From Phyllobates terribilis (taxonomy: Eukaryota), in assembly GCF_046119375.1 (NCBI RefSeq), contig NW_027362761.1, positions 494,202,001 to 494,266,000 on the forward strand: DNA of 64,000 bases, read 5' to 3'. How positions within the stretch are numbered: position 1 is the stretch's first letter; every line of letters starts with the position of its first letter. The position numbers and the translations under genes are program-made. Below, in pieces: positions 1,672 through 36,254 of the stretch. A model generated the notes under the pieces. That model was given only the letters and a program-made list of their open reading frames with translations, was not told the origin of the DNA and did no database searches.

Positions 1672-4600
1672 TTGGCACTATATAAAAATAAAGATTATTA
1701 TTAGTTTATTGAATGGAAAACTTGTTAGGGAATATATACAAGAGATAACAGGCACACAGACTTATGAACGTATCCTTTACAACTTAAAGCATTTTCCACA
1801 CAGTTTCCTTCCTTCTTTTCTCTATTGTTCTCTATCTTCACTTTTCCTCTTTACTGTCTCTATAGGTCCTTTGTATTCGCTGTTCCTCACTACTTCACCA
1901 CAACCCAGCTTAACACTACAGTCCTGCTTAGGAAGAGTCATGTAATCGTCCCGTGGTTCCGCATCTTCTTTCCCCTAATGGTGCCAGTATGACTGGTACT
2001 TATCTTCTCTAGTAATGATGCACTGGAACTTCCATCCGGGGCATTTTACTTATCTCACATACTCTTTGAGTTGTAAACTCTGGACCTTGCAACTAGGTGT
2101 CCACTCTCATGACCTGTCTCTGGTAGTTCACACTGTCTATCAGTCACTTCTGCTCTGGATCTCGCTATCTTTTCCTTTCGGTCTCATCTCAGTTTAGGGA
2201 CACCCCAGACTGTGGCACTGCTCACATTTTACCTTAGGTCCTCTTTTTATGCACTCTGGGCCCTGTCTGACTCACTACCAGGAAATTGTCACTTTCCCTT
2301 CAACATAGCCCCTCCCACTATGAGTTAGTCCCAAACATTAACTCTATCCATCCCTGCTGTCAAACTACTCTCATTATCAATATTACTAACATCTTTAACG
2401 CACATCACAATTCACATTACATCACATAACATTAAACTTGTTTCTTCAAGCAAGAACGTGGGCAACATATCCATCTCCTTACACGGGACTTTTTTTTTTT
2501 CTATAGGGCTAATAACTTACTGGCAGATATTTGATATCTACCTGCCTGTGCTGCTTTGCAATGATATTTTCTGGTTCAGTTCGGTCATGCATCACTCCTG
2601 ACTGTGATTCTCCTGTTCCCTGTGACGGCACATCAACAGAGCAGGTTCTTCTATTCTGCTGCTTCCTTTGACCTCACGTCGACAGAGCACCTCTTTCTTC
2701 ACCGCTCTGCTTTGTCAACGGGGTGTCACCACCAACGTCATACTGATTGACAGTCGGCTCCCCGCCGCCTAACTGTGGGAAGCTGGCTGTGAATCAGCAT
2801 GACTTTAGCAGTGGATGTGTGACGCCTCTACTCGTAAAGCCCCTGTTTTACCCTGGGTGTTGGGGCACTCTGTGTCGGGCCCTGTGATGGAGAGGTGGGA
2901 TGCAGCCGTGGCCCGGGCCCGACCCGCGCTCAGGGCCGTCACATTAGAAAGAGATGGTATGGGCTTGTCCGGGTTGAGTGGCTGATTAACAACTACGCCA
3001 CCTGTGGTGCCTGATGAAGGGTCACCAACGCCGCTGCAGTCCGCTGAGGCATGGTGTTATGGCGGCCAAAGTTCTTACTACTCCCCACAGGCGGAGCAGG
3101 ACCTCAGGGCAGAGGGACAGGATGGAGGGGGTAGTAGTTGAGGAGAACGGGCTCCGCGTCTCGCGGTGTGGCGCAGAAATAACAGTCCGGAGGCCATAGG
3201 GGTGAACTTCCAAGGCTTTACTCACTTCAGAGATGGCAGAAGGAAGGCGACTCCCTGCTCCCCGCGGAGTCCTGCGGTCTCCAGGGACAGGGGTCCGACA
3301 ACCTCCGAGTAAGTCCAGCATTCAGTCGCGGCCCTACAGCAGAGTGTTCCTGAACTACAGACCGAATCCTTTCCTGTCCGTGTGTGTGCAAATAGGCCAG
3401 GTCTCCCTCTGAGCTCCTCTCAGAACTAGGGCACGGGTGGCAATTCCTCTCCATCCGATACCCGGTGGGATCCTCTGGGCCTAACCGGGCTTTCCCGACC
3501 AGGACATAGAGTAGCAAGGTCGGGTGTCGGGGGCCGGTACCCCTCTTGCAGCCGGAATCCCTCTGAATAGATCAGCTAGGCGAGGACAGGTGGCGTACAC
3601 TGCTCCGTCTGCATCCTCCCCGGGACCCATTTGCTGTGGAGCCACACTCTAGAGCTCCCGGGCCTTCTTGCTCATGGTCCTCGACCGGGCTGAGATAGTC
3701 CTTATCTCCCACCTGCCTATCATCCCAAGGCCTAGGGACTAGGGTCGTGTCTCCATCCCCTGCAGGACCACACAGGATCCACTTTCAGGGTAGGAGATAC
3801 GTTCTGACACCAGTCAGGGCACAGCCGAAAGACCCATCAAAAGACCAAGATCAAAGATGGCTTTACATTAAATAATAGATTAGAAGCGTAACTAATTTGT
3901 AAGTCCTCCACCCTCACCCACTAACTGGTTCCTACCACTTTGTGTTCCCCAGTCTCCCTGTAACCAGGGGAGCAGCACCTAGTGCATACTAGCCCCCCTT
4001 GGATGCAAGAGATTTGGTCACGACTATCACACTGACCTTACCTCAGAGGAGGAACACCACACTCCATTGAAGATAGTGCAGCATCCCTGTGGCGGTCGAA
4101 CCCTCAGGGGCGCCACATTCCCCCCTGGTAAAACACAGCACGTCCGCGGGCTGCAAAAGAAGTAACACCCAGGAAATTTCTTTTTATAATAACAAGAAAA
4201 CTATCATCCCTTTATGGGAGGCACCATTTCTTAAACGTTGCATAACAGGATATACAGTATAAAAATCTAAAAGTATAAAATTACAAAAGTGCTAGCATTT
4301 TTCCAGAGACATTAGTGCAAACAGACAGATAAAAGTGCAAGGACGCAGAGTCAGTTCAGAAGTGCGAGGGACCTGCCCTAAACCCTCAACGTGGGCCCTG
4401 GGATGGCTGCAGGGCATGAAGATCCCGAGTTGGACCTTCCGGAGAGCCACCCTGACAGGTTTTTCTTCTGATGTCTTGAGGTAGAAATATCCGCGGTTTT
4501 TGTATAAAACCAATGTGGAGCACCTAAAGAGATGCAAACTATTTACAATTTAAAGAGTCTGTCTGCTGCCAGTCCGCAGGGATACGTGTCTCTAGAAGCC

Positions 4601-4676
4601 GGTTAAGAAATTAAGCAATAATAGAAAAAGTCAACATTTAAACTTGTAAACAAAACAGAAACAGCCGGAGGCTGCT

Positions 4677-5765
4677 TTACACCTCGGGCTCCCTCCTTGG
4701 AAAGGGCTCATTCCTCCCGACGGAGGCTAGCCGGTCCCCTGAGGCTGAGTGCGGGGTGGCGTCGCTCCCGGACACTTTGTGCACGTCCAGGGCGTACCAC
4801 CCTCGCTCCCCCTGGTGGCGAGAGAAAGTCACTGTATCGCCCGGGAAGAGGTTCCGACCAGGGTGTCCCTTCTTGAGGCGCGGCTCGACGTCCCGCCGGC
4901 TGACGAACACATCATCCTGGTAATGGGGACACCGGATGAACCCCCACCCCGCCTCATGGTGAAAACGGACGACTTTGCCTTCCAATCGGGGACTGGAACG
5001 GATGGCCTCCTCCTGACGGGCCCGGGATTTGGCAGCTTTGGCCCGTACCTCGAGGTGCTCGCAGCGCTGCTCCCGCTGACCCCGCTCCCGAGCGAGCTGG
5101 AAGATCTGGCCACTGCACCACTGGCTCCTCCTCCACGCTTGAGCCCGGGTCTCCCGGGGGAAGCCCATCAGGTCGCCACCCTGGTTTTCCCAGGCCCACT
5201 CCTCAGCCTCGGGCCAGGTTACTGTTGGTGCGGGTAGCGGGGTAAGAACAGGTTGCTGCGGGTCCTCCACGGACCAGTCCAGGTTGGAGCCGGTAGTTTC
5301 CTCCGCAGTTTCAGGCACCTCCGTGTCAGGGTTTGGGCGGCATCGCAGGTCCCCACCCATAGCTGCCGATTGCAGCTCTGGAGCTAACGCTTGCTCCCAG
5401 GAGACCGCGTGGGGAATTAGATACTCCGTCATGAGGTCCAGGATAGTCACGGTAGGCTCTGCAGCCGGGGCAGGGGTTGCACGCTCACCCGCCTCTAGGC
5501 TGCCCTCGACCTCTGTCACCGCGTCGACTTGTCCCGGGACCTCGACTCCTTGGCGGCGGTCCCGGATACGCAGCAGCATCTCCTCCTGCCACGCAGCCGT
5601 CGCCGCCTCCTGGGCCTCTCTTTGCTTTCTCAAGTGTCCCGGAGCTTCCTGCCGGAGAAATGCAAAATCTCCCGAGGTCAACACGCTGCCGCCTTCCTCT
5701 CTGCCGGGTGAAGGGCCTGAACCGGGTTCAGAAGATGCATGGACTTGCTCCCCAGAGGCGTCCAT
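4677..5765 (-). CDS. 362-aa protein: acidic/low-complexity N-terminal part, putative coiled coil, C-terminal cold-shock domain (aa ~260-331, nt ~4773-4988)
   Basis: Segment LEGKVVRFHHEAGWGFIRCPHYQDDVFVSRRDVE...LFPGDTVTFSRHQGERGWYALDVHKV aligns by eye with the CSD consensus (G.V.WF....GFGFI.......DVFVH...I......L..G..V.F....G..G..A..V). RNP1-like GWGFI and RNP2-like DVFVS are present. The ORF is uninterrupted. Confidence 0.85.
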   Translation of the reverse strand: MDASGEQVHASSEPGSGPSPGREEGGSVLTSGDFAFLRQEAPGHLRKQREAQEAATAAWQEEMLLRIRDRRQGVEVPGQVDAVTEVEGSLEAGERATPAPAAEPTVTILDLMTEYLIPHAVSWEQALAPELQSAAMGGDLRCRPNPDTEVPETAEETTGSNLDWSVEDPQQPVLTPLPAPTVTWPEAEEWAWENQGGDLMGFPRETRAQAWRRSQWCSGQIFQLARERGQREQRCEHLEVRAKAAKSRARQEEAIRSSPRLEGKVVRFHHEAGWGFIRCPHYQDDVFVSRRDVEPRLKKGHPGRNLFPGDTVTFSRHQGERGWYALDVHKVSGSDATPHSASGDRLASVGRNEPFPRREPEV

Positions 5766-6125
5766 GTCTGCCTCTGTTGATTGCCAAGCTCCGACTGCAA
5801 TGGCCGCACCTTGTTGCTTTTCTTCTTCCTCCTCTTTCGGGGCGGTTCCTGGGCGGAATGCTGACCGGCCAACCTTCGTTCAGCCCATCCAGTTTGACGG
5901 GCATTACCCCGCGGACAGTCTCTGATGGAAGGGGCCGTCCACATTTTTGGCGCCAAGCGGGAGCCCAGTCCACGATGGGAGGCGTTCAAAGACAGTCTTT
6001 TTACAGCACTATGGCGTCTGTACTTCTTGGGCGGGCGCCATTTTAAGTGTAAAACAACAGTTCAAGGTGTAAGGCACACAGTACCCGGTAGCAATGGGTA
6101 ATTCTTCCTTTGCTGCGGGCACGAG

Positions 6126-6143
6126 ATCCTGCCGACTACGCCA
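6126..6143 (-). other. Primer-binding site, tRNA-Ser (AGA/TGA type), element A
   Basis: Minus strand TGGCGTAGTCGGCAGGAT is complementary to the vertebrate tRNA-Ser 3' end ...ATCCTGCCGACTACG-CCA (tRNA sequence recalled, not searched). 3-nt spacer to the LTR. Confidence 0.88.
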
Positions 6144-7952
6144 GGTTGTGACGCCTCTACTCGTAAAGCCCGTGTTTTACCCTGGGTGTTGGGGGACTCT
6201 GTGTCGGGCCCTGTGATGGAGAGGTGGGATGCAGCCGTGGCCCGGGCCCGACCCGTGCTCAGGGCCATCACATTAGAAAGAGATGTTATGGGCTTGTCCG
6301 GGTTGAGTGGCTGATTAACGACTACGCCACCTGTGGTGCCTGGTGAAGGGTCACCAGCGCCGCTGCAGTCCGCTGAGGCATGATGTTATGGCGGCCAAAG
6401 TTCTTACTACTCCCCACAGGCGGAGCAGGACCTCAGGGCAGAGGGACAGGATGGAGGGGGTAGTAGTTGAGGAGTACGGGCTCCGCGTCTCGCGGTGTGG
6501 CGCAGAAATAACAGTCCGGAGGCCATAGGGGTGAACTTCCAAGGCTTTACTCACTTCAGAGATGGCAGAAGGAAGGTGACTCCCTGCTCCCCGCGGAGTC
6601 CTGCGGTCACCAGGGACGGGGGTCCGACAACCTCTGAGTAAGTCCAGCATTCAGTCGCGGCCCTACAGCAGAGTGTTCCTGAACTACAGACCGAATCCTT
6701 TCCTGTCCATGTGTGTGCAAATAGGCCGGGTCTCCCTCTGAGCTCCTCTCAGAACTAGGGCACGGGTGGCAATTCCTCTCCATCCGATACCTGGTGGGAT
6801 CCTCTGGGCCTAACTGGGCTTTCCCGACCAGGACATAGAGTAGCAAGGTCGGGTGTCGGGGGCCGGTACCCCTCTTGCAACCGGAATCCCTCTGAATAGA
6901 TCAGCTAGGCGAGGACAGGTGGCGTACACCGCTCCGTCTGCATCTACCCCGGGACCCATTTGCTGTGGAGCCACACTCTAGAGCTCCAGGGCCTTCTTGC
7001 TCATGGTCCTCGACCGGGCTGAGATAGTCCTTATCTCCCGCCTGCCCATCATCCCAAGGCCTAGAGACTAGGACCGTGTCTCCATCCCCTGCAGGCCCAC
7101 ACAGGATCCACTTTCAGGGTAGGAGATACGTTCTGACACCAGTCAGGGCACAGCCGAAAGACCCATCAAAAGACCAAGATCAAAGATGGCTTTACATTAA
7201 ATAATAGATTAGAAGCGTAACTAATTTGTAAGTCCTCCACCCTCACCCACTAACTGGTTCCTACCACTTTGTGTTCCCCAGTCTCCCTGTAACCTGGGGA
7301 GCAGCACCTAGTGCATACTAGCCCCCTCTGGTGGAGAAGTGTGGTGTTGGATGCAAGAGGTTGGGTCACGACTATCACACTGGCCTTACCTCAGAGGAGG
7401 AACACCACACTCCATTGAAGAAGTGCAGCATCCCTGTGGCGGTCGAACCCTCAGGGGCGCCACAGATGCACTGTCGACAACAGAGCAGAAAAGAAAGAGA
7501 GTAAGCTGCTCGATCGACGTGAGGTCAAAGGAAGCAGGATAATGGCACATGAGCCTGGAGAGATTGTAACAGGCAGAACAGACAAGTAGTTAGCAACTAC
7601 CTGCTTGTAAGCTCTTAGCCATATAGGAAAATAAAACAGTCCCAGATATGCTGGCTTTGCAGCATCTTGCTGACATCACTGTCAAGCACAGAGCTATGAT
7701 GCCTGTAATACAGCAGGTGATGGCTGAGGACACTGATCGGCTGCAGTGGTCACAAGGTAACAGGAGTATCTGCATTGCATCAGCTGGAAAAGAAGTAGTG
7801 AGCACTTTTTTTTCCTGTACTATTTTCAGCTGTTTTTTAGGTTTTTCTTTTTTCTGTTTTGGAAACTGATAATCCCTTCTTAACTGCTTTAGGCAACTGG
7901 AAGTGTTCATATTAACCCTTTCAGTAGTACTAATAATAATATGTAAAGCTAC

Positions 7953-8375
7953 TGTTATGATCTGCTACAAGCACTAAGGAAAGAAAGGAGATCTGTCCCT
8001 ACAATAGAACTAAGCTAGATCCCTACGATGTAATGGGGAACCTGATCCTGCGATCAGACCCGCTAAAGTCCTCGGCTAGTCTGTACGAAGACCTATAGAT
8101 GCAAGGGAGGGATCCCTACAAGAACTAGGGACTGGGATAAAGTTGGGCACCTCTTAGCAGAAATTGTAGCAGTAAAAGACAAACACACAACATAGAACAT
8201 AAAGGTCCGAAGACCAAGCTAAACAAACTGAGAAAGGTAACTAAGCACCAGGCTAACTTAAGAGTAGAAATTACAATGAAGTCCAGCAAGGCCAGGAGGG
8301 CGGAGCAGGATTAAATAGGCAAACAAGGTCATGTGACCAGCAAGATAGAAGAAACCTAACAGGAGAGTTCTAACA
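7953..8375. mobile_element. Solo LTR of an unrelated family (same family as 47469-47903)
   Basis: TGTTATGA...TTCTAACA termini, perfect 5-bp TSD GCTAC. Clear similarity to 47469-47903. Confidence 0.85.
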
Positions 8376-8440
8376 GCTACACCACAAAGTTCACTTTTTA
8401 CACAGCTGATACTCTTTGTTGGAAGTTGTTGTAACCTTAT

Positions 8441-9426
8441 TGTCGTGCCCAGGGGATGCGGACAACTCGGTACCCGGGCCTTTACCTGGTTTGGGGATGT
8501 CACGGTGGTCGGCTCCCAGGCCCGTAGCCTGGGGTCACTCTTGAAAAAGGGGATTGTAACTTGGATAGAAAAATAAAAATAAAGTAAATAGTTTGTGACG
8601 CCACCTGTGGTACCTGGTAAGGTTTACCAGATCTGCTGCAGACCTCCGGGGGGGTGTTGGGATGTCAGCTGAGGTGTTTCTGCTCCCCACAGGTGGAGTG
8701 GGCCCCAGGGGCAGTGTGGAGTTTGATGGTGGGTGGTGATGCTGGGGCTTGTAGTGCAGGCGGGATGGCGCAGCAGGAGTAACTGACAGAGACAGGGGAT
8801 TCGCTTCAATACCTTTACCAATGCGGATGTCAGGTACGTTCCAGGGTACTCAGTAGGATGGGTGCACTTCAGGACTTCTCCCCAGTGAGCGGGTATAAGG
8901 CCTCCTGGTCCGTGTCTGCCTCTCTGTATGCTCCTGGCCAGCCTGCAACTGGGCCTAGCTTATGTGTCGTGCTGTTCCTTCACCTGTCGCTCGGTAGTAG
9001 GACCTTCAGGTCAGCCAGGGACTTGTAGTCCTCCTGGAATGCCGGTGATCCCTACTGGGTATAAAGGACCCTGTAGGCGCGGACCCGGTGTCCGGTTTGT
9101 ATATCGGGGTGAGCCTTTGATACTCCTCTGCCCCCTCAACTCCTCTCTCCTTTCTCCTCTTGCCTTCGGCCACACTCGGGGCCCTCAAAACGGCAGCAGA
9201 CGTGCTGCGTCTTCGCTGCTCTCAGCGTAAGCACGCTCTCTCAACTACTAACTCTGACTGAACTGAACTGCCTGGCTCCACCCTCCATATATATATCCCT
9301 AACGGGCTCCCTCTGGTGGTGTGAGGTGGAAGGGTGGAGGTGTTTGTATGTAACGAGGGCCTCTTGTGGAGAAGTCCGTCCATGCACCCTGGGTCCTGTG
9401 GTACCTGTGAACAGCAGGGTGCCACA
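8441..9426 (-). mobile_element. Diverged solo LTR related to the autonomous Gypsy at 29072
   Basis: The first ~200 bp align to 29072 onward (CCCAGGGGATG...ACTCGGTACC...GTGACGCCACCTGTGG). Ends GGTGCCACA. TSD is not clean (TTAT/TTGG). Confidence 0.75.
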
Positions 9427-9772
9427 TTGGTGCAGACTGCTGGACTAAAACTCCGGCAAGTCAAGTCTGCAAGTTGTGAACATGACCTGCTCCGTGTGCA
9501 GCACATGAGTGTAGGAGCTGCCTGTTATTGACATGCACTAGCCTGGTCCATACATCAGACCAGATTAGCACATGGTGCAAATTTTTTTCACACTGATAAT
9601 TGGTCCATGGGAAAAATTGATGATCAAAGACAAACAGGTTATTATTGCATCAGCATGCCATACATTGAGCACATGGACAGAACACTGACCTAAAATGTGG
9701 CTTTCTGAATGAGCCCTAATAGAGTGCTCAGAGAGTCCATTTTGGCTGCTATCACCAATATACTTTTATTAA

Positions 9773-10138
9773 AAGGGTTGTCCGGTCCAAATCGATAAGT
9801 CTGCAGTGACTCTGTGTGACTGCACTTATGAATTCCCCCAGCGCGAGCACTTTGCACTGCGGGCATTTGCCGGTTTCTGAGCCTGGACCGCAGGGTATGA
9901 GTTATACATACTCCTGGCCAGAGCCCGTATAGTGGGCGTGGCCTTGCTCCATACCAGTGTATGGAAGCGAGGCTGTTCCTCCCTGGCCGGGAGTATGTAT
10001 AACTTATACATACCCTCCGGTCCCGGCTCAGATACCGGCGAATATCTGCAGTGCACAGTGCATGCGCTGGGGGGGATTCATAAGTCTGCATTCACACAGA
10101 GTGTCTGCAGATTTATTGATTTTGGCCAGACAACCCTT
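9773..10138. mobile_element. T2/Kolobok-type MITE
   Basis: TTAA flanks on both sides; inverted termini AAGGGTTGTC...GACAACCCTT; internally palindromic. Confidence 0.75.
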
Positions 10139-13100
10139 TTAAGGAACTGCTATTTATGCAATTACCTAATACTGTTAAATCCAGGGGAAGCCAATCAAAA
10201 TGATCTGGTTCTTTCACTCTGGTATTAGAGGTTGTGCAATGGCCTGCTCAACCAGTTGTTTTAGAAAGTTAGTGAAAATCCAGCCCGTTTCCAGTGTGAA
10301 ACATCCAAATTAAAAACATTAAAAAACAGGACTTTCTGGGGAAAGTAGCAAAAAAATCTACGCATTTCGAACTGTCATTTCTGTGCGGTTCTTATTCACA
10401 GCATGAATGCCGGTTTCAAACTTGTAGGTTTTTTTGTAACTTTCTGGCGGATGTCCTATTTTTTAATGTTTCAATAAAAGTCTGTTTTTATTCACATTGG
10501 AAAACAAGTGCTGGATTTTCACTAACTTCCACTAAGTCCTATCCATTCTTTCCCAACCGGCATTTTCATCTAAGCACTTTCTATGGATTTAACCAAGCAT
10601 TTGAGAGGTGAGCTGAAAGCACACAATTTTTCCACCAGTGGTTACAGATCTTCTCAGCAAAAACTGCACAGTGCCCTCCTGATCTGTGGAGCAAAGTCAT
10701 ATCACGGAGTTTATTTGGCCCTTCAGGCACTTAGTGTGACCTTAGTACTAATGTTTTATTACTAGTTTCGCCTTCACGTTTTATTACTTTTTTTACTTTT
10801 GTCGTTTGAGGAAGCAAATAGAGAAAAACCTGTCATGTTAGGGTTTGCTGTTTTTCAATATACTTTTTATTACATGTTCAATTTTAACATACACTTTAAT
10901 ATTTGTACATGATGAGGTACAAGAGCCCCCAGCTACCCTGTAATTTATGATGATTTACTAATATTTGGGTTCCTAAACATCTGTCTAAGATTACATGAAA
11001 AGACAAAAGTATTTGTGCAATCCTACATCCACAGGTCTGTGGTTAGTTCTCCAAGATGTTGGGAACAACCTCTCTGCCGAGTTCCTTCACAAACTGTTTT
11101 GCAAGTGTCCCTAGAAGAACGGATACTGTTTTGATTTAGATTTCTCTTTTGTTTATTCACTTTGCATTTTAATTGATAAAAATAAACTATTAACACTTCT
11201 ATTTTTGAAAGCTTCTTACTGTGCAGTACTGTGTATATGTATACATGTGTATATATACGTTGATCTCTGTCATAGCAAATAAATAAAGTGATCATTGAGT
11301 GCCAAAGTTCATTATCTCGTTGAATAGAGTATGGCAATGTTTGCTTGCTGGGTGCGGCAATTCACTAGTAATGAAACACTGCACAAGTAAAGTCTGTGTC
11401 TTGGCAGCAAGCTGTAGAATAAGTACAGATATTCAGTTTGAGTCTGTCTTTGCTTATATGAACATATTATCCTATCTAAATACAAGTTAGTTCAAATGCG
11501 TTGAAGCAAAAATGTGATGTTCAAAAAAAAGGCAAAAGGAGCCAACAAATCAAGACTGGTGAGGGTTACATACTAGTGTAAGGAGATGGACATATTGCCT
11601 ACATTCCCCTTTGAAGAACACACAGATTTCTGTATTGTATAATGCATATCACAAATCACATTAATAGTGTTGGCGTTGTGTTCTGCCTGACAGTAGAGAG
11701 AGTTACAGTTAATATTTGGGACTAGCCCAGAGTGGAGGGGGCCAAGGGACAGACACAGTTTCCTGTAAGGACATCAGATAGTGCCAGTGTGTGTCAGAAG
11801 CAGACCTAAGGTCTGAACAGTAAGCAGTGGCACATGATGCGGGTGTCCCGAAGTGAGAGGAGACCAAGACAGTGGTTAGCATGAACTGGAGTAAAGAGGA
11901 AGGAAAACCGACAGAAGAACAGAATGGTCAACCAGAGACGGGTCCTGGGAGAGGACGCCTAGAAGTATGGCCCAGAGTTTATAACTCAGAAAGGTAACGG
12001 GCCAGGACTGGACAGGTAACGTGAGACGAACTGAGGGTTGAGAATAGGACTCTGACTAACTGGTCTGTAGTACTGAGCTAGGTTTTGGTGAAGGAAGGTG
12101 AAACAGTGGAGATAGAGAACAAACAAGTTAAGAGAAAGGAATTGAGACTGTGTGAAAATGCTCTGTATTTTGAAGGAAATGCCCATCAAGCTATGTACCT
12201 GCTACCTGTTGAACATAATCCCCACCAAGTTATCGTTCAGTAAAAACTTTATTTTTGACTGGTGGTCTCCCTCATAGAACTGTTCAACATCTGGTCCTGG
12301 CCAACCAAAGTCATCCGTAACATGCGGACTGCAAGGGCTTAGCGCCTCCACAGCACAAGTCCAAACCCTCACCCTCACCTTTATGTAAAGTGTCAGGGCA
12401 TAAGAGACGAGTATCCTACGCAATGTTACACTAGTGATCAACATTTCTCACCAGAAAAGTAGGTGCTCTAAGCCACAGTCAGTATGTTGCTAAGACGCAG
12501 ATTCTCTAGAATCGCCTTCTTTTTCAGCTTTACAGGGGTTGTTCCCTTTCAATTTCGTTTCTACCTTGGAGTAAAGAAAAAGAATGAAGAGCTCACCTTC
12601 CTTGCTGGTAATGGAGTCAGCTGAAAGGAATCTTTACCAGTGGGTGCTGTGTTCAGCTGGTGTGTACAGCAATATGGGAGATGAAAAGTAATTCAGCACA
12701 TCCATCCAGTAAGGGCTCTTTCCCGAAAAACCAGTACTGGAGATATCTGTGTCCGTGTGTACCTGTGTAGCATACGTGTGGCAACCGTGTGCCGTCTGTG
12801 TGCCGCATCAGGAGCACACGTACCGGCGTTTGGGAATCAGTGGTACAGCTAGCGCTGTTCCCAAGTGCCGGGTGCTGAACGCTTTTCTCATCATTGTCCC
12901 CTGCCAGCGCTGTGATCAGCACCAGCAGGGGACCATGATCAGAGTAGTATTCTGCTCCTGCAGTGTCCAACTGTTAAAATAAGAATAAAATTTAAAAAAT
13001 CCATATACTCACCGGTCCTAAGTGTCTTCCGCTGTAATCCATGCAACTGCTCATGCCAAGGAGCTGTGGAGAATGACTCGCTCCAGTGAGCGGGGCCCTG

Positions 13101-15386
13101 GAGCGGCGCTCAGCGAGTGGTGTCCTGTCACTCAATGATTGCAGTGAAGCTTCGGGGCCTGCTCGCTGCAGGAGTTATTCTCCCTGGCTCCTTGGCGTGT
13201 GCGGTCTCATGGATTACAGTGGGGGGCACTTAGAACAGGTGAATATATGGATTTTTTTATTTTATTCTTATTTTTACAGGTGGAGACACCGGGAGCAGAA
13301 TACTACTCTCATCATTATCCCTTGCTGGTGCTGATTGCAGCTCTGGCAGGGGACTATGATGAGGACAGTGCTTGGGAACAGCGCTAACTGTACCGCTGAT
13401 TCCCAAACGCCGGTAAGTGTCACACGGATGACATCCGTGTGCGGTATGTGTTTACATGTACCCATTGACTTGAATGGGTCTGTGTGATCTATGTTGCCGG
13501 ACAAAAATGGACACGTCTACGTGTGGATCACATGGTCCGTGGAAACACACTGACATGTTCACAGACCCATTCATTTGAATGGGTCTACGTGTGTCAGCGT
13601 CTCCGGTATGTGTGGAAACTGTCACCACATGAACCGGACACACTGACGTGTGAAAAAGCCCTAATATATATAAAATGTTCAACCCACCCTTAATCATCGT
13701 GTAGAGAGATGGACGAGAGAGACTAAGTAACTGTAAGTAAACACCACCCTCTGCTGGAACAAACTGAAAGTGAAACAAAGAATTGTGTTAGCAGGAACCA
13801 AATGTTCCTGGCAGTTTTTGCAGGGGGAGAGACTTTTGTGTGATGGACCTGATCATGTGACCCAGAGAGTTTCCTGGGTATAAAGGCCATGTGTGCCAGA
13901 TTGCAGGGGCTTTTTGTACCAAGAGAGCGCAGGGTGCAGATGTGCACCGCAGGAGACGCTGCAGCCAGAGAGTTTTGGTACCAAGCTGCAGAGTGGAGCA
14001 GACGTGCTCCAGAGGGACAGCAGAGCCCAACGCGACAGGCCCCAGCTGGAGGGCTGCGCTGCACCAGAGCTGGACATCACCTGAAAAGCTCTGCACTCCT
14101 CACAAAAGCCCCCCTGAGCCCTGCACATGTTGGTCAGAGTCAGGACCTGCGCCCCACATTGAGTAAGTTCCCGGGATCCGACGCTGCCTGTCAAGAGCCA
14201 AGGTCAGGACCCCCTTCCCCCAAGCGTGAGAGACTACTCTCGAAGGTCAAGCCGAGAAGAGCTGAGAGAGGACCGCGACAGGAAAGACACACCAGCAGCA
14301 GCGGAGGAACTGCGCAAGTGAACAGAGCCGTCACAACTCTCACCTACGGTACAGGGGACAGTTGGGATTAGGATCTCAGGTTGGGTGGGGGCTGTTTGGT
14401 GCGTGGGAGGCTAAACGGGATCTGATAGACTTTATCTGGAAGAGACGTGTGGCCTAGCGGGAAGAACCGGTGACTCACTCTAGGTCGGTGACCTGCATTA
14501 CAATCGTATACTATGATTAAGGGTGGGTTCAACAGAAAGGCGTCAGTTTTTTAATGCTACCATGGATGTTTGTGTTTTAATGGATTAAAAATAAAGATGA
14601 ACTTTTTTTATTTATTGCCAGATAGATGTGCTGAATTCCTTTTCCTATCCTACGTTTATACCTTGGCTGCATTTTGTTGTATTAAAAAAAACTAACCGCG
14701 CTCTACTTACCTTTTCTGAGTCCACCAGCGAGCCTTTGCCGCTGCTCCTAGTGTCTGGCATTATTTGTGGCGCTGCCTCCACCTTGACAGCGCAGCTGCC
14801 AATCAGTGATCTCAGCGGCTCTGTCAGTGTAGACGCAACAACCCCTTCAGAGATGCTGAGCTCAGTGATTGGCTGCTGCAGTGTCGAGCCCCTGGGTTGA
14901 GATGTTTATTAATGTCTTTAATAAGTTTTCACTGTGGCAAAGTAGCCTCTGCTCTGTTGGGTTTTCACTGCATTTAGAGGGTACAAAGGCTTTTGGGCCA
15001 TTGACATTGGAAGCCTATGATGGCGTGAGAGCATAATGAGCCTTTGATTGTCAGATAAAGGACATGAGTATGCTAGGACATTGTCTGATCTGTTACCTCC
15101 TCCATACTAAACATTGTGACAAATGACTAAATTTGTGTATTCTCTACCCCAGTATCCAGTATGTGCAGTTTATATCTGCAATGTTAGCTTAATGGGTTAT
15201 ATACAATTCTTAAAAAAAACTATGGTTTTCCAGACCAGGACATTATAAAAAAAAGCATCTTTAGAAGCTCTAAACATTAGGTACATACAACCGCACATGA
15301 ACAACAAGATATGACATATTACACCTTGTCATTATTTATTTATCAAAAGCTAGGACAAAATGCAGAGGCAGTGTGTAAAAATTTAA

Positions 15387-20473: not shown

Positions 20474-21661
20474 CCGTATTTTTCGGACCATAAGACGCAC
20501 TTTTTTTCCCCCCAAATTTGGGAGGAAAATGGAGGGTGCGTCTTATGGTCTGAAAGTAACTTACCAGTGGCGGTGGAGCGGGATCGGCGGCGGCAGCGGC
20601 GACAGCGGCAGCAGATGGCGGCGGCAGCAGAAGCGGTATCTGCCCGGTATCGGGGCCGGTTTCTTGATGTGAGCAGCGTGAGCTGCTTCAGGTGAGCACG
20701 GCCATCTTTCTAAAGCTGATCTACAGGAAAATGGCCACCGGAGCTGGCGCATGCGGTCTACTACGCCGGCGGCCATTTTCCTGTAGATCTCAGCTTCAGA
20801 AAGATGGGCTTGAGCATCGGAAGCCGCTCACGCCGCTCTGCCACGCTACTCACAGCAAGACACCGGCCCCAGTACCAGGCCCCAGGGCCCCAGCCACCTC
20901 TCACCCAGGCCCCAAGCCCCAAGCCCCCAGCCACCACTCACCCAGGCCCCAAACCCCAGCGCCAGCCATCACTCCCCCAGGCCCCAAGCCCCCAGCCACC
21001 ACTTACCCAGCCCCCAAGCCCCAGCGGCAGCCATCACTCCCCCAGGCCCGAAGCCCCCAGCCACCACTCACCCAGGCCCCAAGCCCCAGTGCCAGCCATC
21101 ACTCCCCTAGACCCCAAGCCCCCAGCCACCACTCACCCAGGCCCCAAGCCCCAGCGCCAGCCATCACTCCCCCAGGCCCCAAACCCCCAGCCACCACTCA
21201 CCCAGGCCCCAAGCCCCCAGAGCCAGCCACCACTCACCCAGGCACCAAGCCCCCAGCGCCATCCACCACTCACCCAGGCACCCAAACCCGCAGCGCAAGC
21301 CACCAGGCCCCCAGCCCACCAGCACCAGGAGCCCAGGTCACCAGGCACCCAGCCCCAGGCCACCAGGTGCCCAGTGCAGGCCACCAGCACCAGGAGGCCA
21401 GGCCACCAGGCGCCCAGCCCCAGGCCACCAGCGCCAGGCACCCAGGCCATCAGGCGACCAGCGCAAGCCACCAGCGCCAGGCACGGCTTCCTGAAGGACC
21501 TTGCCTCCTGTGCCCCAGCTACATGGCCCATCCAGGTAAGATACCTATTCAGACTATAAGACGGACCCCCATCTTATCAAAAAATTTTTTTTCCTGTTTT
21601 CCACCCCAAAATTTCGGGTGCGTCTTATGGTCCGGTGCGTCTTACAGTCCGAAAAATACGG
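20474..21661. mobile_element. Tc2/pogo-type MITE (CCGTATTTT termini) with GC-rich internal tandem repeats
   Basis: TIRs CCGTATTTTTCGGAC.ATAAGACGCAC, TA on the left. A second copy lies in opposite orientation at 51086-52074. Confidence 0.85.
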
Positions 21662-22189: not shown

Positions 22190-23894
22190 TATATCCATTC
22201 AGGCCGCCCCTTCCTTGCATATATCCATCCTGACTCCCCCCCATCTATCCCTTCGGGCCCCCATATGTACAGTGTGCCCCTTCCATATATTTATCTTAGC
22301 CCACGTGTATCGAGCCTTCCCCCTCCCATATACCCATCCTAGCCCCCCATGTGTCCAGCCTGCCCCACCCACATATCCATCCTGGCCTCCATGTGTCCAG
22401 CCTGCCCCCTCCCATATATCCATCCTGGTCTCCATGTGTCCAGCCTGCCCCCCCATATATCCATCCTGGCCTCCATGTGTCCAGCCTGCGACCCCATATA
22501 TCCATCCTGGCCTCCATGTGTCCATCCTGGCCTCCATGTGTCCAGCCTGCCCCCCATATATCCATCCTGGCCTCCATGTGTTCAGCCTGCCCCCCCACAT
22601 ATTCGTCCTGGCCTCCATGTGTTCAGCCTGCCCCCCTTATACCCATCCTGCCCCCCCTTCCCATGTGTCCAGCCAGGCCCCCCCCTTATGTGTCCATCCA
22701 GGCTCCCCCCCTTGTTTGTCCAGCCAGGCTCCCCCCTTAATGTATCCAGCCAGCCCCCCCTCTCGTGTGTCCATCCGTGCTCCCCCTTTGTGTGTCCAGC
22801 TGGGCTCCCCCCTCATGTGTCCAGCCAAGGTTCCTCCTCGTATGTCCAGCCAGGGTTCCCCCTCATGTGTCCAGCCAGGGTTCCCTCTCGTGTGTCCAGC
22901 CAGGGCCCCTCCTCGTGTGTCCAGCCAGGGCCCCCTCTCATGGGTCCAGCCAGGCCCCCCCTCGTGTGTCCAGCCAGGGCCCCCCCTCATGTGTCCATCC
23001 AGGGTTCCCCCTCATGTGTCCAGCCAGTGTTCCACCTTGTGTGCCCAGCTGGGCCCTCCCTTGTGTGCCCAGCCGCAGTTCCCCCTTGTGTGTCCAGCCA
23101 GGGTTCCCCCTTGTGTGTCCATCCGGCTTCCCCCTTGTGTGCCCAGCCTGGCCCTCCCTTGTGAGTCCAGCCAGGGTTCCCCCTTGTGTGTCCAGCCAGG
23201 GCCCTCCCTTGTGTGTCCAGCCAGGGTTCCACCTTGTGTGTCCAGCCGGCTCCCCCCTTGTGTGCCCAGCCGGGCCGTCCCTTGTGTGCCCAGCCGGGCC
23301 CCACCTTGTGTGTCCAGCCAGGGTTCCCCCTTGTGTGTCCATCCAGGGCCCCCCATTGTGTGTCCAGCCAGGGCCCCCCCTTGTGTGTCCAGCCAGGGCT
23401 CCCTTTTGTGTGTCCAGCTGGTCCCCCCTTGTGTGTCCAACCAGGGTTCCCCCTTGTGTGTCCAGCCAGGGCCCCCCCTTATGTGTCCAGCTAGGGCCCC
23501 CCCTTGTGTGTCCAGCCAGGGCCCCCCCTTGTGTGTCCAGCCAGGGTTCCCCCTTGTGTGTCCAGCCAGGGCCCCCCCTTATGTGTCCAGCTAGGGCCCC
23601 CCCTTGTGTGTCCATCCAGGGCCCCCTCTTGTGTGTCCAGCCAGGTCCCCCCTTGTGTGTCCAGCCAGTCCCTCCATTGTTTGTCCAGCCAGGGTCCCCC
23701 CTTGTGTGTCCAGCCAGGTCCCCCCTTGTGTGTCCAGCCAGTCCCCCATTGTGTGTCCAGCCAGGGCCCCGCCTTGTGTGTCCAGCCAGTCCCCCCATTG
23801 TGTGTCCAGCCGGCCCCCCTTGTGTGTCCATCCAGGCCCCCCTTGTGTGTCCAGCCAGGGCCCCCCCTTGTGTGTCCAGCCAGGGGCCCATCCC
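22190..23894. repeat. C-rich minisatellite (~39-bp units grading into ~24-bp CCCCCCTTGTGTGTCCAGCCAGGG units)
   Basis: Visible tandem repeats; the source of the long repetitive ORFs on both strands. Confidence 0.92.
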
Positions 23895-24026
23895 NNNNNN
23901 NNNNNNNNNNNNNNNNNNNNNNNNNNNNNNNNNNNNNNNNNNNNNNNNNNNNNNNNNNNNNNNNNNNNNNNNNNNNNNNNNNNNNNNNNNNNNNNNNNNN
24001 NNNNNNNNNNNNNNNNNNNNNNNNNN
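23895..24026. other. Assembly gap (132 N)
   Basis: Run of n characters. Confidence 1.
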
Positions 24027-27817: not shown

Positions 27818-28780
27818 TCAATACAGTATTATGGGCACCACATAGTCCTCCATACAGTATTATGGGCACCACATAGTCCTCCATACAGTATTATGGGCTC
27901 CATATAATGCTCCATACAGAATAGTGGCCCCCATAAAATGCTCCATACAGGATACTGGCCCCCATATAACGCTCCATACAGGATACTGGCCCCCTTATAA
28001 CGCTCCATACAGGATACTGGCCCCCATATAACACTCCATAAAGGCTGTGCCCCCACATAATGCCTCATGCAGGCTGTTCCCCCCATATAATGCCCCACGC
28101 AGGCTGTTCCCCTCTTATAATGCCCAATGCAGGCTGTTCCCCCCATATAATGCCCCATGCAGGATGTCACCCCCTTATAATGCCCCATGCAGGTTGTCAC
28201 CCCCCTTATAATTCCCCATGCAGGATGTCACTTCCCCCCTTATAATGCCCCATGCAGGATGTCACCCCCCTCCCTTATAATGCCCAATGCAGGAGGTCAC
28301 TTCCCCCCCTTATAATGCCCCATGCAGGATGTCACTTGCCCCCCATATAATGCCCCATGCAGGATGTCACCCCCCTTTTAATGCCCCATGCAGGATGTCA
28401 CCCCCCTTATAATGCCCCATGCAGGATGTCACTCCCCCCCTTTTAATGCCCCATGCGGGATGTCACCCCCCCCCTTTTAATGCCCCATGTAGGATGTCAC
28501 CTCCCCCCCTTTTAATGCACCATGCAGGATGTCACTCCCCCCCTTTTAATGCCCCATGCAGGATGTCACACTCCCCCCCATTTTAATGCCACATGCAGGA
28601 TGTCACCCCCCCACCCTTATAATGCCCCATTCAGTATGTCACCCCCCCCTTTTAATGCCCCATGCAGGATGTCACTCCCCCCCTTTTAATGCCCCATGCA
28701 GGATGTCACACTCCCTCTCCCTTATAATGCCCCATGCAGGATGTCACACACACCCCCCCCTCCCATATAATGCCCCATGC
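27818..28780. repeat. Minisatellite array (~31-33-bp units, CCCCTTATAATGCCCCATGCAGGATGTCAC)
   Basis: Visible tandem repeats; reverse complement of the unit at 48905-49650. Confidence 0.9.
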
Positions 28781-33700: not shown

Positions 33701-34890
33701 ATGCGATTTACTTGACGGTAATCTACACACATTCTCATGCTCCCGTCCTTTTTCCTAACTAGCACTAGGGGAGCTGCCCAGGGACTACAACTATCACTTA
33801 TTACTCCCACCTTTCTCATGTCCTGCAGCATTTCCTTAGCCTTCTGGTAGTGAGCTGGTGGTATAGGCCTGTAACGTTCTTTGATTGGGGGATGGTCGCC
33901 TGTGGGGATATGATGTTGAACCCCCTTAATCCTCCCGAAGTCAAGTGGATGTTTACTGAACACCTGCGAGTATTCTTGAACCACCCGGTGTACACCCTGT
34001 TTTTGATGGGCAGGAGTGGTGTCTGTCCCAACATGGAGCTGTTGACACCAATCCTCCACCTGGGTTGCAGGGTCATTATCCTCCACTTCATCTGGTGAGG
34101 TTAAGGACTCCGCCTTGTGAATGCAGTTGTTATTGACAGCATGTAATTTGGCAACAGTGGCATAACGTGGCAGTCTGACCTCATCTTCCCCTAAATTGAG
34201 AAGACGGATGGGCACCCTCCCATTACGTACATCTACCACTCCTCTGGCGGTTAAGAGCGTGGGTCTGTGCTCGGAGCAAAGGGGTTCTACTACCGCCTGG
34301 TAGCTCTGTCCTCTAAGACCTATAGCAGCTCTACACCAGATGAGAATTTCACTCATTGGGGGGAAGACAATGGGTATGGGGTCTGTTACCCGCATGTTAC
34401 CGATTTCACCGTCTGTTAACTTTACTTGCTGCTGATACATCAGGACTCGGATCTCCCTCTGCTGTGCCCTCCTCTGTCTTGGTCTGGCAGTGTCGGCTAT
34501 CTGTTGGAGCAAGAACACAACTTCTCCCAAACAGTTACCAACAATGTTAGTGCCTAGTACCATATACGGATTGGTGTCATCAGGATTAGTCTCTACTACA
34601 ATTAGCCCTTCAGCTCCACTCTCCCCACCTTTACAGTCACATTCTTAACCCCGAGTAGGTTATGGGGGAGTCCATTTGAGGCATATACAGAAAGATTTGG
34701 AGCTGGCGGACGTAGGTCGTCCATGAACCAGAACCTCTGTGTCCAGCAGGGCATGCGTCGGGATCCCATCCAACAGAATGGACAGGAAAGGTCTTCCTCC
34801 GACGAACCTGTTGTACCAGTCTGATGGGCCTGGTGAGTTTACTCCTGGGTGTCGGCCCTCGGACCCAGGGTTTTCTCGTTTAAAGGACAA
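30787..34890 (-). pseudogene. pol: pol: protease (LLDT, then deletion/frameshifts), RT (YLDN at the YxDD site), RNase H (YTDAS), integrase (HDQAGH..C..C, D,D35E); in-frame TAG at 32992-32994
   Basis: Motifs SPWAAPLVLVRKKDGSMRMCVDYR, FSTLDLTSGYWQV, MPFGLCNAPGTFQR, ENYSSFKLEFLAL, LTDQGPAFEAELF, TTPYHPQTNGLCE. ORFs 32992-34563 and 30787-32907 are in frame and separated by one stop codon. Confidence 0.95.
34826..34884 (-). promoter_or_regulatory. Putative gag-pol -1 ribosomal frameshift signal (UUUAAAC plus H-type pseudoknot)
   Basis: Heptamer at 34878-34884 where the gag (CPLNEK) and pol (SFKREN) frames overlap in -1. Stem CCUGGGU/ACCCAGG; loop GGGCC can pair with downstream GGCCC. Confidence 0.75.
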
Positions 34891-36236: not shown

Positions 36237-36254
36237 ATCCTGTTCGTGACGCCA
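36237..36254 (-). other. Primer-binding site, tRNA-Ser(CGA type), autonomous Gypsy
   Basis: Minus strand TGGCGTCACGAACAGGAT is complementary to the tRNA-Ser(CGA) 3' end ...ATCCTGTTCGTGACG-CCA (recalled). 8-nt spacer to the LTR. Confidence 0.85.

Follow-up and report, generated by a model that had tools for sequence, protein, structure and literature searches.

A cold-shock-domain protein as the only gene of a non-autonomous Ty3/Gypsy-type LTR retrotransposon in Phyllobates terribilis and other dendrobatoid frogs

Cold-shock domains (CSDs) are already known from reverse-transcribing elements, since 46 bird ERVs carry them; the domain was acquired several times, and this convergence has been read as adaptive (Mol Biol Evol 2025, msaf171; PMC12287698). 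Non-autonomous LTR elements, such as LARDs, TRIMs and the gag-only BARE-2 of barley, depend on a related autonomous element, and the usual view of them is that they either encode nothing and hitch-hike or have kept no gene but gag. Among the RNA-binding proteins of retroelements, LINE-1 ORF1p uses an RRM plus a CTD, and the nucleocapsid (NC) uses CCHC knuckles. Poison-frog genomes measure 6-12 Gb, a size that they owe chiefly to the expansion of Gypsy elements. The element described here comes from the poison frog Phyllobates terribilis. As the capture of CSDs by LTR elements has been published for bird ERVs, the part that is likely to be new is the presence of a CSD protein as the only gene of a frog Gypsy-type element.

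The window, i.e. the whole stretch of 64,000 nt that was analyzed, contains a complete LTR element, element A, at 2818-7464 on the minus strand. Its 5' LTR (6147-7464, minus strand; 1,318 bp) starts with TGTGGCGCCCCTGAGG and ends in ...GGCGTCACA, and its 3' LTR (2818-4117, minus strand) measures 1,300 bp; both were delimited by self-BLAST and by MAFFT alignment to each other. The LTRs have TG...CA termini (TGTGG...GTCACA) and differ by 34 mismatches and two indels of 1 and 19 bp, with a K2P of 0.027. The element is flanked by a 4-bp target-site duplication (TSD), CATC, whose upstream and downstream copies lie at 7465-7468 and 2814-2817 (both minus strand). The primer-binding site (PBS; 6126-6143, minus strand), TGGCGTAGTCGGCAGGAT, is complementary to the 3' end of tRNA-Ser(AGA/TGA), as it agrees at 18/18 positions with the reverse complement of the 3'-terminal 18 nt in human tRNA-Ser-AGA-1-1 / Ser-TGA-2-1 (3' end sequence from PMC10359600). 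After the PBS comes the leader (5766-6125, minus strand), which contains four upstream ATGs and, within its first ~100 nt, a box, CGTGCCCG...CCACCGGGTACTGTGTGCCTG, that is common to Gypsy G, to element B (both described below) and to the CSD elements of other frogs. RNAalifold predicted a stem in this post-PBS region, but without compensatory pairs. The trailer (4127-4676, minus strand) is non-coding and includes the boxes GCAACGTTTAAGAAATGGTGCCTCCCATAAAGGGA and GCAGCCCGCGGACGTGCTG (4136-4154), which are common to Gypsy G, and the polypurine tract (PPT; 4118-4126, minus strand), AGGGGGGAA, adjoins the 3' LTR. With its LTR pair, TG...CA termini, TSD, PBS and PPT, element A satisfies the structural definition of an LTR retrotransposon. 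Rfam and tRNA scans of the whole window gave no matches.

Leader and trailer together account for 940 bp of the 2,029-bp interior, and the remainder is a single ORF. A tblastn search of this interior with the Gag, RT and RH-IN of Gypsy G found no match, so that element A can only be a non-autonomous derivative of Ty3/Gypsy; the order that defines an autonomous Ty3/Gypsy element, gag followed by protease-RT-RNaseH-integrase, is not met. Membership among the LARDs or TRIMs was ruled out by the conserved ORF and by the omega of ~0.05 in its CSD. In element A, a single gene takes the place of gag-pol; the protein that it encodes has an acidic disordered N-terminus, followed by a basic helix of considerable length and by a CSD that is divergent. 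The ORF (4677-5765, minus strand) is intact, encodes 362 aa and starts in a good Kozak context (GACATGG). Its product is arranged as an acidic disordered N-terminal part with a helix at aa 43-73, the basic helix, the CSD and a short tail. The long basic α-helix (codons 207-256; 4998-5147, minus strand) directly precedes the CSD, and it is modeled by AF2 with a pLDDT of 78-97 and has a pI of 11.4. The N-terminal 200 aa show no homology to anything. No Pfam Gag match and no BLASTP or hhalign similarity to the Gypsy G Gag were found in the ORF, and the idea that its N-terminal region is a hidden Gag was rejected, as BLASTP, hhalign and AF2 all gave nothing. The CCHC zinc knuckle is absent from every member of the family.

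The CSD (codons 260-330; 4776-4988, minus strand) is supported as a five-strand β-barrel by Pfam, PDB matches, AF2 and Foldseek. The ORF scores 32.5 bits against Pfam PF00313, above the gathering cut-off of 27, as do its homologs P0001 (36.9 bits) and P0009 (32.1 bits), while P0002 (24.1), P0005 (23.7) and P0127 (26.8 bits) fall just under it. The PDB matches are Csp and YB-1. In the AF2 model the strands run over residues 260-269, 274-278, 285-289, 311-318 and 323-330, with pLDDT >90, and the top Foldseek matches of the modeled domain are Csp structures (target TM 0.85-0.89, rmsd ~2 Å). The domain is therefore predicted to adopt a five-stranded antiparallel OB-type barrel, although this rests on the model and not on a solved structure. 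Of the seven residues with which CspB contacts nucleic acids (W8, F15, F17, F27, H29, F30, F38), only three are aromatic in element A: in the HMMER alignment, F15, F17 and F27 correspond to W274, F276 and F287, and W8, H29 and F30 are replaced by the non-aromatic R267, S289 and R290. On the RNP surface, the positions of W274, F276 and F287 stay aromatic across the dendrobatoid family, R290, H301 and R304 are invariant, and the RNP2 motif is changed from VFVHF to VFVxRR, within the signature GWGFI...DVFVxRRDVExHLpKGHPGRDLyPGD...GWYAL. Given this altered RNP2 and the small number of aromatic contact residues, the ligand of the element A CSD could differ.

The window also contains Gypsy G (29072-37429, minus strand), with LTRs of 1.16 kb that are 96.3% identical, the TSD AGAG and a PBS that matches tRNA-Ser-CGA. 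It encodes a Gag with CCHC (34839-35729), an RT (32992-34563) and an RNaseH-integrase (30787-32907), all on the minus strand, in which CCHC Gag, RVT_1, RNaseH and rve domains are recognized; the pol frame is interrupted in the window copy. Positions 1024-1415 and 2990-3357 of element A (element coordinates) align with Gypsy G at 65-68% identity. The trailers measure 559 nt in A and 555 nt in G and are homologous over ~370 nt, at 68% identity. The leader of A has 381 nt and that of G 533 nt to its listed GTG start or ~590 nt to the first ATG, and their alignment is limited to the first ~100 nt after the PBS. Element A belongs to the Ty3/Gypsy lineage by non-coding descent, as it shares homologous U5, PBS-region, trailer and PPT sequences with G. 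It has retained the cis-acting sequences of an autonomous Gypsy lineage, i.e. LTR ends, tRNA-Ser PBS, post-PBS box, trailer boxes and PPT. Since the start of the leader, the trailer boxes and the PPT are homologous to those of an autonomous element, mobilization in trans is likely. G itself is not the partner of A, because the PBS types differ (Ser-AGA in A, Ser-CGA in G) and the pol of G is interrupted; it is inferred to be a candidate for the type of autonomous partner, not the actual partner copy.

Element B (53624-60402, minus strand) is a CSD-less relative that forms a tandem LTR-interior-LTR-interior-LTR array with a period of 2,779 bp and 99.65% identity. It has the same tRNA-Ser-AGA PBS and the same pre-PPT box as element A, and between its LTR and that of the Phyllobates CSD element the identity is 66%. 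An ORF of 139 aa in its 1.5-kb interior gave no Pfam match, and the interpretation of this ORF as a truncated CSD protein was discarded because it shows no significant similarity to one. As this element, with the same cis signals, has persisted and been duplicated, the CSD is not needed for mobilization as such.

Much of this anatomy had been proposed in a first-pass annotation made from sequence alone, and most of it held: the 1.3-kb LTRs, the TSD, the tRNA-Ser PBS, the PPT and the interior without gag or pol, the ~30-35 differences between the LTRs estimated by eye (34 mismatches when counted), and the intact ORF with a C-terminal CSD, for which the Pfam, AF2 and Foldseek checks were all positive. 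It had also taken a solo LTR at 44782 as a sign that the family has moved, which is confirmed, as this LTR (44782-45916, plus strand) is 87% identical to those of element A and has its own 4-bp TSD, AATG. The claimed match in length between A and G was right for the trailers, which are moreover homologous, and only partly so for the leaders, where the lengths differ and only the beginning aligns. The proposal that the ORF sits in the gag-pol slot of a non-autonomous element is supported.

Homologs of the ORF were found by an exhaustive protein search that covered 1.84 billion representatives. They come from frogs only (P0001, P0002, P0005, P0009, P0015 and P0127), specifically from the genera Phyllobates, Ranitomeya and Anomaloglossus, and from nothing else. 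A word-indexed protein search with the whole ORF or with region 196-335, complemented by a profile of the family alignment, added no new member; the profile returned P0009 alone, which was already part of the query alignment. Four other complete CSD elements with TSD, tRNA-Ser PBS and PPT were recovered from three other species, and the identity of their LTR pairs is 100% (L001), 99.5% (L003), 99.8% (L004) and 99.7% (L006). The occurrence of CSD ORFs between such LTRs, with TSDs, in three genera indicates a mobile family of dendrobatoid frogs; it is found in Dendrobatidae and Aromobatidae, and the sister copies are very recent insertions. One copy, L005, has an in-frame stop, and L002, a copy from Ranitomeya variabilis, retains the ORF although the PBS, the leader and the greater part of the 5' LTR are missing. 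NCBI annotates the CSD ORFs as single-exon protein genes. A Penelope-like identity of an insertion within L004 was not accepted, as only YIDD and GIY-YIG-like motifs were seen by eye and Pfam gave no match. Full-text literature searches, which did not extend to Dfam or Repbase, turned up no published account of a frog element of this kind.

Strong purifying selection has acted on the CSD in the lineages of the transposing elements. Comparisons of the domain give a pN of 0.23-0.39 versus a pS of 0.66-1.0, and a maximum-likelihood codon model estimates omega at 0.045 (lnL -1701.2 vs -1817.9 with omega fixed at 1). This value is rough, given that synonymous sites are saturated, and the comparison includes seven CSD copies only, all reached via gene annotation and thus biased toward intact ORFs; L005, with its in-frame stop, is one of the seven. 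The conservation of the CSD protein in spite of that saturation implies that selection acted in the transposing lineages; each of the compared copies lies between near-identical LTRs, so that their divergence predates insertion and arose in replicating lineages. The acidic disordered N-terminal part evolves fast (pN 0.46-0.63). The intactness of the ORF in element A is not evidence of selection, as neutral simulation leaves an intact ORF in this copy ~24% of the time (P ~0.24), and the earlier caveat that intactness alone is weak evidence was right. Of the outcomes that had been named beforehand as refuting the first-pass annotation, none of the testable ones was observed: instead of no significant CSD match, copies without the ORF or a dN/dS near 1, the CSD match is significant, the four other copies keep the ORF and omega is far from 1.

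The origin of the domain, for which a CSD phylogeny had been suggested in that annotation, remains unplaced. In the CSD tree, which did not include the canonical YBX, LIN28 and CSDE1 of frogs, the dendrobatoid family is monophyletic (support 96/99 for a clade of its own), without a resolved sister group; P0103 falls inside the family clade on a long branch, which is probably an artifact. The high rank of multi-CSD dinoflagellate proteins was rejected as evidence of origin, since it comes only from summed domains; per domain they reach <=39 bits, whereas a YBX1-like frog protein and a small Csp score 47-48 bits. The features of the Y-box family (YBX1/2/3) are not fulfilled either, as the CSDs form a clade apart from the YBX1-like Pseudophryne sequences in this tree, which lacks canonical frog YBX, and as there is no similarity outside the CSD.

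A parallel case exists in another frog, Pseudophryne corroboree. In its protein P0154, a capsid region of Gypsy Gag type is recognized (PNMA, 27.9 bits, cut-off 25), with 33% identity to the Gag of Gypsy G (E 3e-23), and the protein carries a YBX1-like CSD (81 bits) where the Gag of G has its CCHC, with no CCHC of its own; it is encoded by an LTR element with a 2.1-kb interior and without pol. These Pseudophryne Gag-CSD elements (XP_063807823, XP_063786618; L007, L008) resemble element A in their ~2.1-kb interior, in the absence of pol and of a zinc knuckle, in their LTR ends (TGTGAC...) and in a related type of PBS. They differ in that their capsid region is recognizable, whereas the family of element A has none, and in that their CSD is plainly YBX1-like (81-85 bits against PF00313, and by NCBI name), whereas that of the family is far more diverged (24-37 bits). 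The two groups of CSDs are also separate in the tree. The uptake of CSDs by retroelements appears to be a repeated event, seen in bird ERVs, in the Pseudophryne Gag-CSD elements and in the dendrobatoid family.

While the anatomy and the selection described above are very likely right, the role of the CSD protein is inferred. The reading that is favored, by a small margin, is that element A is a non-autonomous Ty3/Gypsy-type retrotransposon whose CSD protein functions in its trans-mobilized copying. In the proposed model, a Gypsy of the G type would supply reverse transcriptase, integrase and capsid in trans, and the CSD protein would raise the chance of the element being copied, probably favoring the RNA that encoded it. 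The most likely of the roles considered is a nucleocapsid-like one, in which the basic helix and the CSD would bind the single-stranded RNA of the element and the protein would be a chaperone or an adaptor for packaging into the particles of the partner, following a logic comparable to that of LINE-1 ORF1p, which joins a helical multimerization region to an RNA-binding domain. Whether the mechanism is nucleocapsid-like is a balanced question, on which no experiment or expression data bear; RNA binding and cis preference are likewise inferred without such data. The N-terminal 200 aa, lacking homology, leave room for the protein to do something unrelated to packaging. The nucleocapsid mimicry suggested by the first-pass annotation is still an inference, which the Gag-CSD fusion of Pseudophryne supports only indirectly, and for the two other suggestions of that annotation, shielding of RNA in oocytes and antagonism of small-RNA silencing, the present analysis provides no evidence. 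A bolder version is possible but less likely, in which the capsid was abandoned and a CSD-coated, ORF1p-like RNP hijacks the particles and enzymes of a partner Gypsy from within an LTR element; if true, the CSD would be a module that can generally stand in for a nucleocapsid with zinc knuckles and be interchanged with it.

It could be argued that the ORF is a much-degenerated Gag in which the nucleocapsid was swapped for a CSD and the capsid decayed to disorder, so that element A would be a gag-only, BARE-2-like Gypsy with no foreign gene replacing gag-pol. The Pseudophryne fusion shows that a related clade of Gypsy elements, with similar LTR ends and PBS, has taken such a route; the ORF begins at the expected gag start, and the CSD loop that joins strands 3 and 4 is as long as in Y-box proteins, its hhalign alignment to P0154 having a single gap. 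However, the N-terminal 250 aa have no similarity to the Gag of Gypsy G or of P0154 by BLASTP or hhalign, AF2 gives disorder and two helices but no capsid fold, and the family CSD does not group with that of Pseudophryne, which makes this explanation unlikely. The remaining three are even less probable. In the first, the CSD gene is a passenger, a transduced host sequence like the oncogene of an acutely transforming retrovirus, with no role in spread and kept because the copies are young. The intact ORF of A fits neutrality, element B spreads without a CSD and the gene-annotation route favors intact ORFs, but the CSD protein is 50-60% identical among very recent insertions despite saturated synonymous sites and an omega of ~0.05, and a neutral gene would be unrecognizable at such divergence. 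In the second, the protein acts on the host, stabilizing or masking its own mRNA in germ cells or interfering with small-RNA or other RNA-based silencing. Selection tells that the protein matters to the element, not how, the fast-evolving acidic N-terminal part would suit an arms-race interface, and Gypsy transcripts are reported to be highly expressed in poison-frog ova (PMC6278860); against it, specific evidence is lacking, a benefit in trans to all elements is hard to keep by selection in one non-autonomous family, and the position of the CSD inside the Pseudophryne Gag suggests particle and RNA functions. Finally, a small family of frog CSD genes that merely lie inside or use LTRs, selected for the frog, would agree with the NCBI gene annotation and with the ORF retained in L002, but five copies lie between LTR pairs with TSD, PBS and PPT, four of these pairs are 99.5-100% identical, and near-identical pairs with TSDs at unrelated loci denote new insertions rather than conserved host loci.

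If the favored reading, a CSD protein that serves the copying of its own element, is correct, a family with a selected, non-Gag and putatively RNA-binding gene would mean that a parasite of a retrotransposon can invest in a factor of its own, and the CSD family would be a natural system for the minimal requirements of a nucleocapsid. Like LARDs, TRIMs and BARE-2, element A lacks RT and integrase while its LTRs, PBS and PPT are intact; a conserved protein-coding gene is missing from LARDs and TRIMs, and BARE-2 encodes a true Gag, whereas element A encodes a conserved non-Gag CSD protein. By analogy, its helical region and basic, putatively single-strand-binding module recall LINE-1 ORF1p and the retroviral or Gypsy nucleocapsid, but there is no homology to either, and element A, an LTR element without its own RT, uses a CSD as this module. 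With Y-box proteins and bacterial Csp it has in common the predicted fold, an RNP1-type GxGFI and an RNP2-type VFV, and its loop is Y-box-like in length, but the His and Phe of RNP2 are replaced in the family, and a C-terminal domain of the A/P-rich or Y-box kind is lacking. Bird CSD-carrying ERVs are, like element A, reverse-transcribing LTR elements with a host-type CSD (PF00313). They are of Retroviridae type, identified by their RT (ERV-A/B, ERV-G), and their CSD is an additional domain whose position varies, whereas element A is a Ty3/Gypsy-type frog element without gag, pol or env, whose CSD protein is the sole gene and in whose family the lineages of the element show selection on the CSD. 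Element A cannot be placed among those ERVs, as it has no RT, its relatives are Gypsy-type and it shares only the carriage of a CSD. Taken together, the dendrobatoid family, the Pseudophryne fusion and the bird ERVs suggest convergent recruitment of CSDs by reverse-transcribing elements.

Element A, an LTR element at 2818-7464 on the minus strand, is bounded by direct repeats that a self-comparison of the window places at 2818-4117 and 6147-7464. The MAFFT alignment of these LTRs contains 34 mismatches and two indels of 1 and 19 bp (K2P 0.027). Read on the minus strand, they start with TGTGGCGCCCCTGAGG and terminate in GGCGTCACA, and the 4-bp duplication CATC is found on both sides of the element. 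The PBS, TGGCGTAGTCGGCAGGAT (6126-6143, minus strand), lies three bases past the 5' LTR and is exactly complementary to the 3'-terminal 18 nt of the human tRNAs Ser-AGA-1-1 and Ser-TGA-2-1 (sequences from PMC10359600); the PPT, AGGGGGGAA, directly adjoins the 3' LTR. The interior of 2,029 bp consists of a 381-nt leader, a 1,089-nt ORF and a 559-nt trailer. This single ORF (4677-5765, minus strand) encodes 362 aa and has the Kozak context GACATGG. At 44782-45916, on the strand opposite to A, stands a solo LTR that belongs to the same family (87% identity) and has a TSD of its own, AATG. Since LTRs, TSD, PBS, PPT, ORF and solo LTR were all confirmed by sequence comparison, the description of A in the first-pass annotation as an LTR element with a lone ORF is correct.

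The position of this ORF is best understood from Gypsy G, an autonomous-type element of similar age (29072-37429, minus strand; 1.16-kb LTRs 96.3% identical, TSD AGAG), whose three separate ORFs encode a CCHC-knuckle Gag, RVT_1, and RNaseH together with integrase. Sensitive BLASTN aligns the U5, the PBS region and the first ~100 nt of the leader of A with the same parts of Gypsy G, and also ~370 nt of the trailer, up to the PPT, all at 65-68% identity, and multiple alignments reveal post-PBS and pre-PPT boxes that are common to A and its relatives, including Gypsy G. Because these flanking non-coding parts align, the ORF of A occupies the gag-pol position of a related autonomous element, as had been claimed at first reading, and A keeps the signals that the enzymes of a partner would require. 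The claimed match in lengths held for the trailers (559 nt in A, 555 nt in Gypsy G) but failed for the leaders, where the 381 nt of A compare with 533 nt in Gypsy G if counted to its listed GTG start and ~590 nt if counted to its first ATG. Gypsy G exemplifies the candidate type of partner and is not itself the partner, as its pol is interrupted near 32907-32992 and its PBS, TGGCGTCACGAACAGGAT, is complementary to the 3' end of a different tRNA, a human tRNA-Ser-CGA isodecoder (tRF-Ser-CGA-013, PMC9659620). About 1 kb from element A, fragments at 8447-8551 and 9251-9387 match the beginning and the end of the LTR of Gypsy G at ~82-90% identity and are probably what remains of a solo LTR of that family. 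The window also contains minisatellite arrays with units of 65 bp (20890-21366 and 51270-52076), 31-35 bp (27848-28747 and 48949-49650) and 25 bp (22236-23889), two of them present twice in inverted orientation; the 25-bp array, of ~50 copies, extends to an N gap (23895-24026). Two imperfect palindromes of 374 bp (9769-10142) and 605 bp (12816-13420), each 78% self-complementary, could be foldback or MITE-like repeats.

The protein encoded by A carries a true, though divergent, cold-shock domain (CSD). Pfam places PF00313 at aa 262-330 (32.5 bits, cut-off 27), and a PDB sequence search matches CspB, CspD and YB-1. An AlphaFold2 model, built from the six-sequence family alignment, predicts an N-terminal half that is acidic and disordered and contains a single helix (aa 43-73), then a long helix of basic character (aa 207-256, pI 11.4) and a five-strand barrel at aa 260-330 (pLDDT >90), for which Foldseek against the PDB ranks cold-shock proteins first (target TM 0.85-0.89). 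In the HMMER alignment, three of the seven nucleic-acid-contacting residues of CspB are still aromatic (W274, F276, F287), and in the family S/T/N/A and an invariant Arg take the place of the RNP2 His and Phe, respectively. Nucleic-acid binding is likely, as an inference from sequence and modelled fold.

An exhaustive HMMER search of 1.84 billion representative sequences yielded six relatives that share the family signature GWGFI ... DVFVxRRDVExHLpKGHPGRDL ... GWYAL, all of them frog proteins annotated as uncharacterised, from the Dendrobatidae and Aromobatidae: Phyllobates terribilis (XP_073514116), Ranitomeya variabilis (XP_077147014, XP_077135778), Ranitomeya imitator (CAJ0923454) and Anomaloglossus baeobatrachus (XP_075187427, XP_075194515). 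When 10 kb either side of each gene were inspected, four proved to lie in complete elements, one in P. terribilis (L001, LTRs 100% identical), two in A. baeobatrachus (L003, 99.5%; L004, 99.8%) and one in R. variabilis (L006, 99.7%). All four carry a PPT and share the box before it, their TSDs are 4-5 bp long, and each PBS is of one or the other of two tRNA-Ser types. Three interiors measure 2.3-2.6 kb and hold no gag or pol; that of L004 is larger through a nested insertion in its leader. Because four complete elements with near-identical LTRs exist elsewhere, the architecture of A recurs, as a recently mobile design, in no fewer than three frog genera (Phyllobates, Ranitomeya and Anomaloglossus). 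The second R. variabilis locus (L002, 9521-14100) keeps an intact ORF and has lost the PBS and leader, and its 5' LTR is reduced to the initial 339 bp (95.6% identical to the 3' copy); it may be dead, or expressed from the U3 remnant. In the R. imitator locus (L005, 9600-10500), an in-frame stop precedes the CSD; the CAJ0923454 gene model begins after this stop and is spliced across ~20 kb, probably an artefact of annotating a decayed element. The L004 insertion (4.6 kb, 5367-9983) is bracketed by a perfect 263-bp duplication (5104-5366 and 9984-10246) and creates a 1,142-aa ORF without any Pfam match, in which the N-terminus of the CSD protein is followed by RT-like (YIDD) and GIY-YIG-like sequence; judged by eye, it might be a Penelope-like element.

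The intact ORF of copy A by itself says little on selection, as the first-pass annotation had cautioned: simulation with LTR-derived rates gives it a neutral probability of 0.24 of staying open. Comparison between copies is informative. Over the 71 codons of the CSD, pS is 0.66-1.0 (randomised) and pN 0.23-0.39, and third-position differences are about twice the second-position ones. The dN/dS check that followed from the first-pass annotation gave, across seven sequences, a CSD omega of 0.045, not near 1 (ML codon model GY+F3X4; lnL -1701.2 vs -1817.9 at omega fixed to 1), a value made rough by synonymous saturation, which leaves its direction unaffected. Because every compared copy inserted very recently, this divergence arose in lineages of replicating elements, so that the elements with a functional CSD are those that left descendants, under purifying selection. 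Evolution is much faster in the N-terminal part (pN 0.46-0.63), which conserves only short motifs, such as DLMGFPxE ~60 aa upstream of the CSD.

A relative without the CSD, element B (53624-60402, minus strand), is a non-autonomous element in a tandem LTR-interior-LTR-interior-LTR array with a period of 2,779 bp and units 99.65% identical. Its Ser-AGA PBS and pre-PPT box are of the same type as those of A, and its LTR is 66% identical, over the full length, to that of L001, the Phyllobates CSD element. No CSD is present in its 1.5-kb interior, where homology to L001 resumes just past the CSD; a 139-aa ORF without any Pfam match is kept in both interiors (58298-58717 and 55519-55938). The CSD is thus not needed for mobilisation as such, and the gag-pol slot seems exchangeable among elements with common cis signals. 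Such free-riders would be expected should the CSD protein also act in trans.

Among single-domain matches outside the family, the family-CSD HMM ranks highest a Csp of 71 aa and, from the myobatrachid frog Pseudophryne corroboree, a protein named 'Y-box-binding protein 1-like'. A cluster-mate of the latter, XP_063807823 (589 aa), has a capsid region of Gypsy Gag type (PNMA, 27.9 bits, cut-off 25), 33% identical to the Gag of Gypsy G (E 3e-23), and, downstream of it, a YBX1-like CSD (81 bits), with no CCHC knuckle. Its capsid-like block lies ~125 aa from the CSD, comparable to the ~107 aa between capsid and CCHC in Gypsy G. Two P. corroboree loci encode this knuckle-less fusion within LTR elements that have a ~2.1-kb interior and no pol: L007 (6997-15695), with one in-frame stop between gag and CSD and insertions in both LTRs, and L008 (9914-17585), of two tandem units 99.97% identical. 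This arrangement, with the CSD in a CCHC-like position behind a capsid, shows on sequence evidence that a CSD can replace the nucleocapsid in a related Gypsy clade. These elements resemble the family of A in their LTR ends and PBS; in hhalign, the CSDs alone align (36% identity, one gap), and the CSD tree does not join them. Independent capture in dendrobatoid and Pseudophryne elements is modestly favoured over common descent, without being settled. In the same tree, a long branch (1.26) within the clade of the frog family belongs to one domain of P0103 (705 aa, seven CSD-like stretches), a placement probably due to long-branch attraction.

Beyond the anatomy, the family, the common cis signals, the purifying selection in element lineages and the CSD fold, which are shown (the fold by a predicted model), the mechanism is inferred. 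Element A would be mobilised in trans by a G-type Gypsy, and the basic helix and CSD would play a nucleocapsid-like role, binding and chaperoning element RNA, and may aid packaging or tRNA-Ser annealing. The protein would have some preference for its own element in cis, because selection could not otherwise hold the gene. Rival explanations of the ORF were considered, namely that it encodes a host-directed factor; that it is a neutral passenger, set against which is the low CSD omega; that it is a degenerate Gag, set against which neither BLASTP nor hhalign finds similarity to the Gag of Gypsy G, and the CCHC knuckle is absent; and that it is a host gene, set against its place inside mobile LTR elements.

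No frog or Gypsy element with a CSD came up in full-text literature searches, Dfam and Repbase being outside their scope; with that reservation as to novelty, A is classed as a non-autonomous LTR retrotransposon that has captured a domain of host type, known as a class and new in this form. The searches did bring up a precedent, 46 bird ERVs that carry CSDs, captured several times (PMC12287698). The family of A differs from them in its Gypsy-type carrier, in having the CSD protein as its sole gene, and in the demonstrated selection on the CSD.
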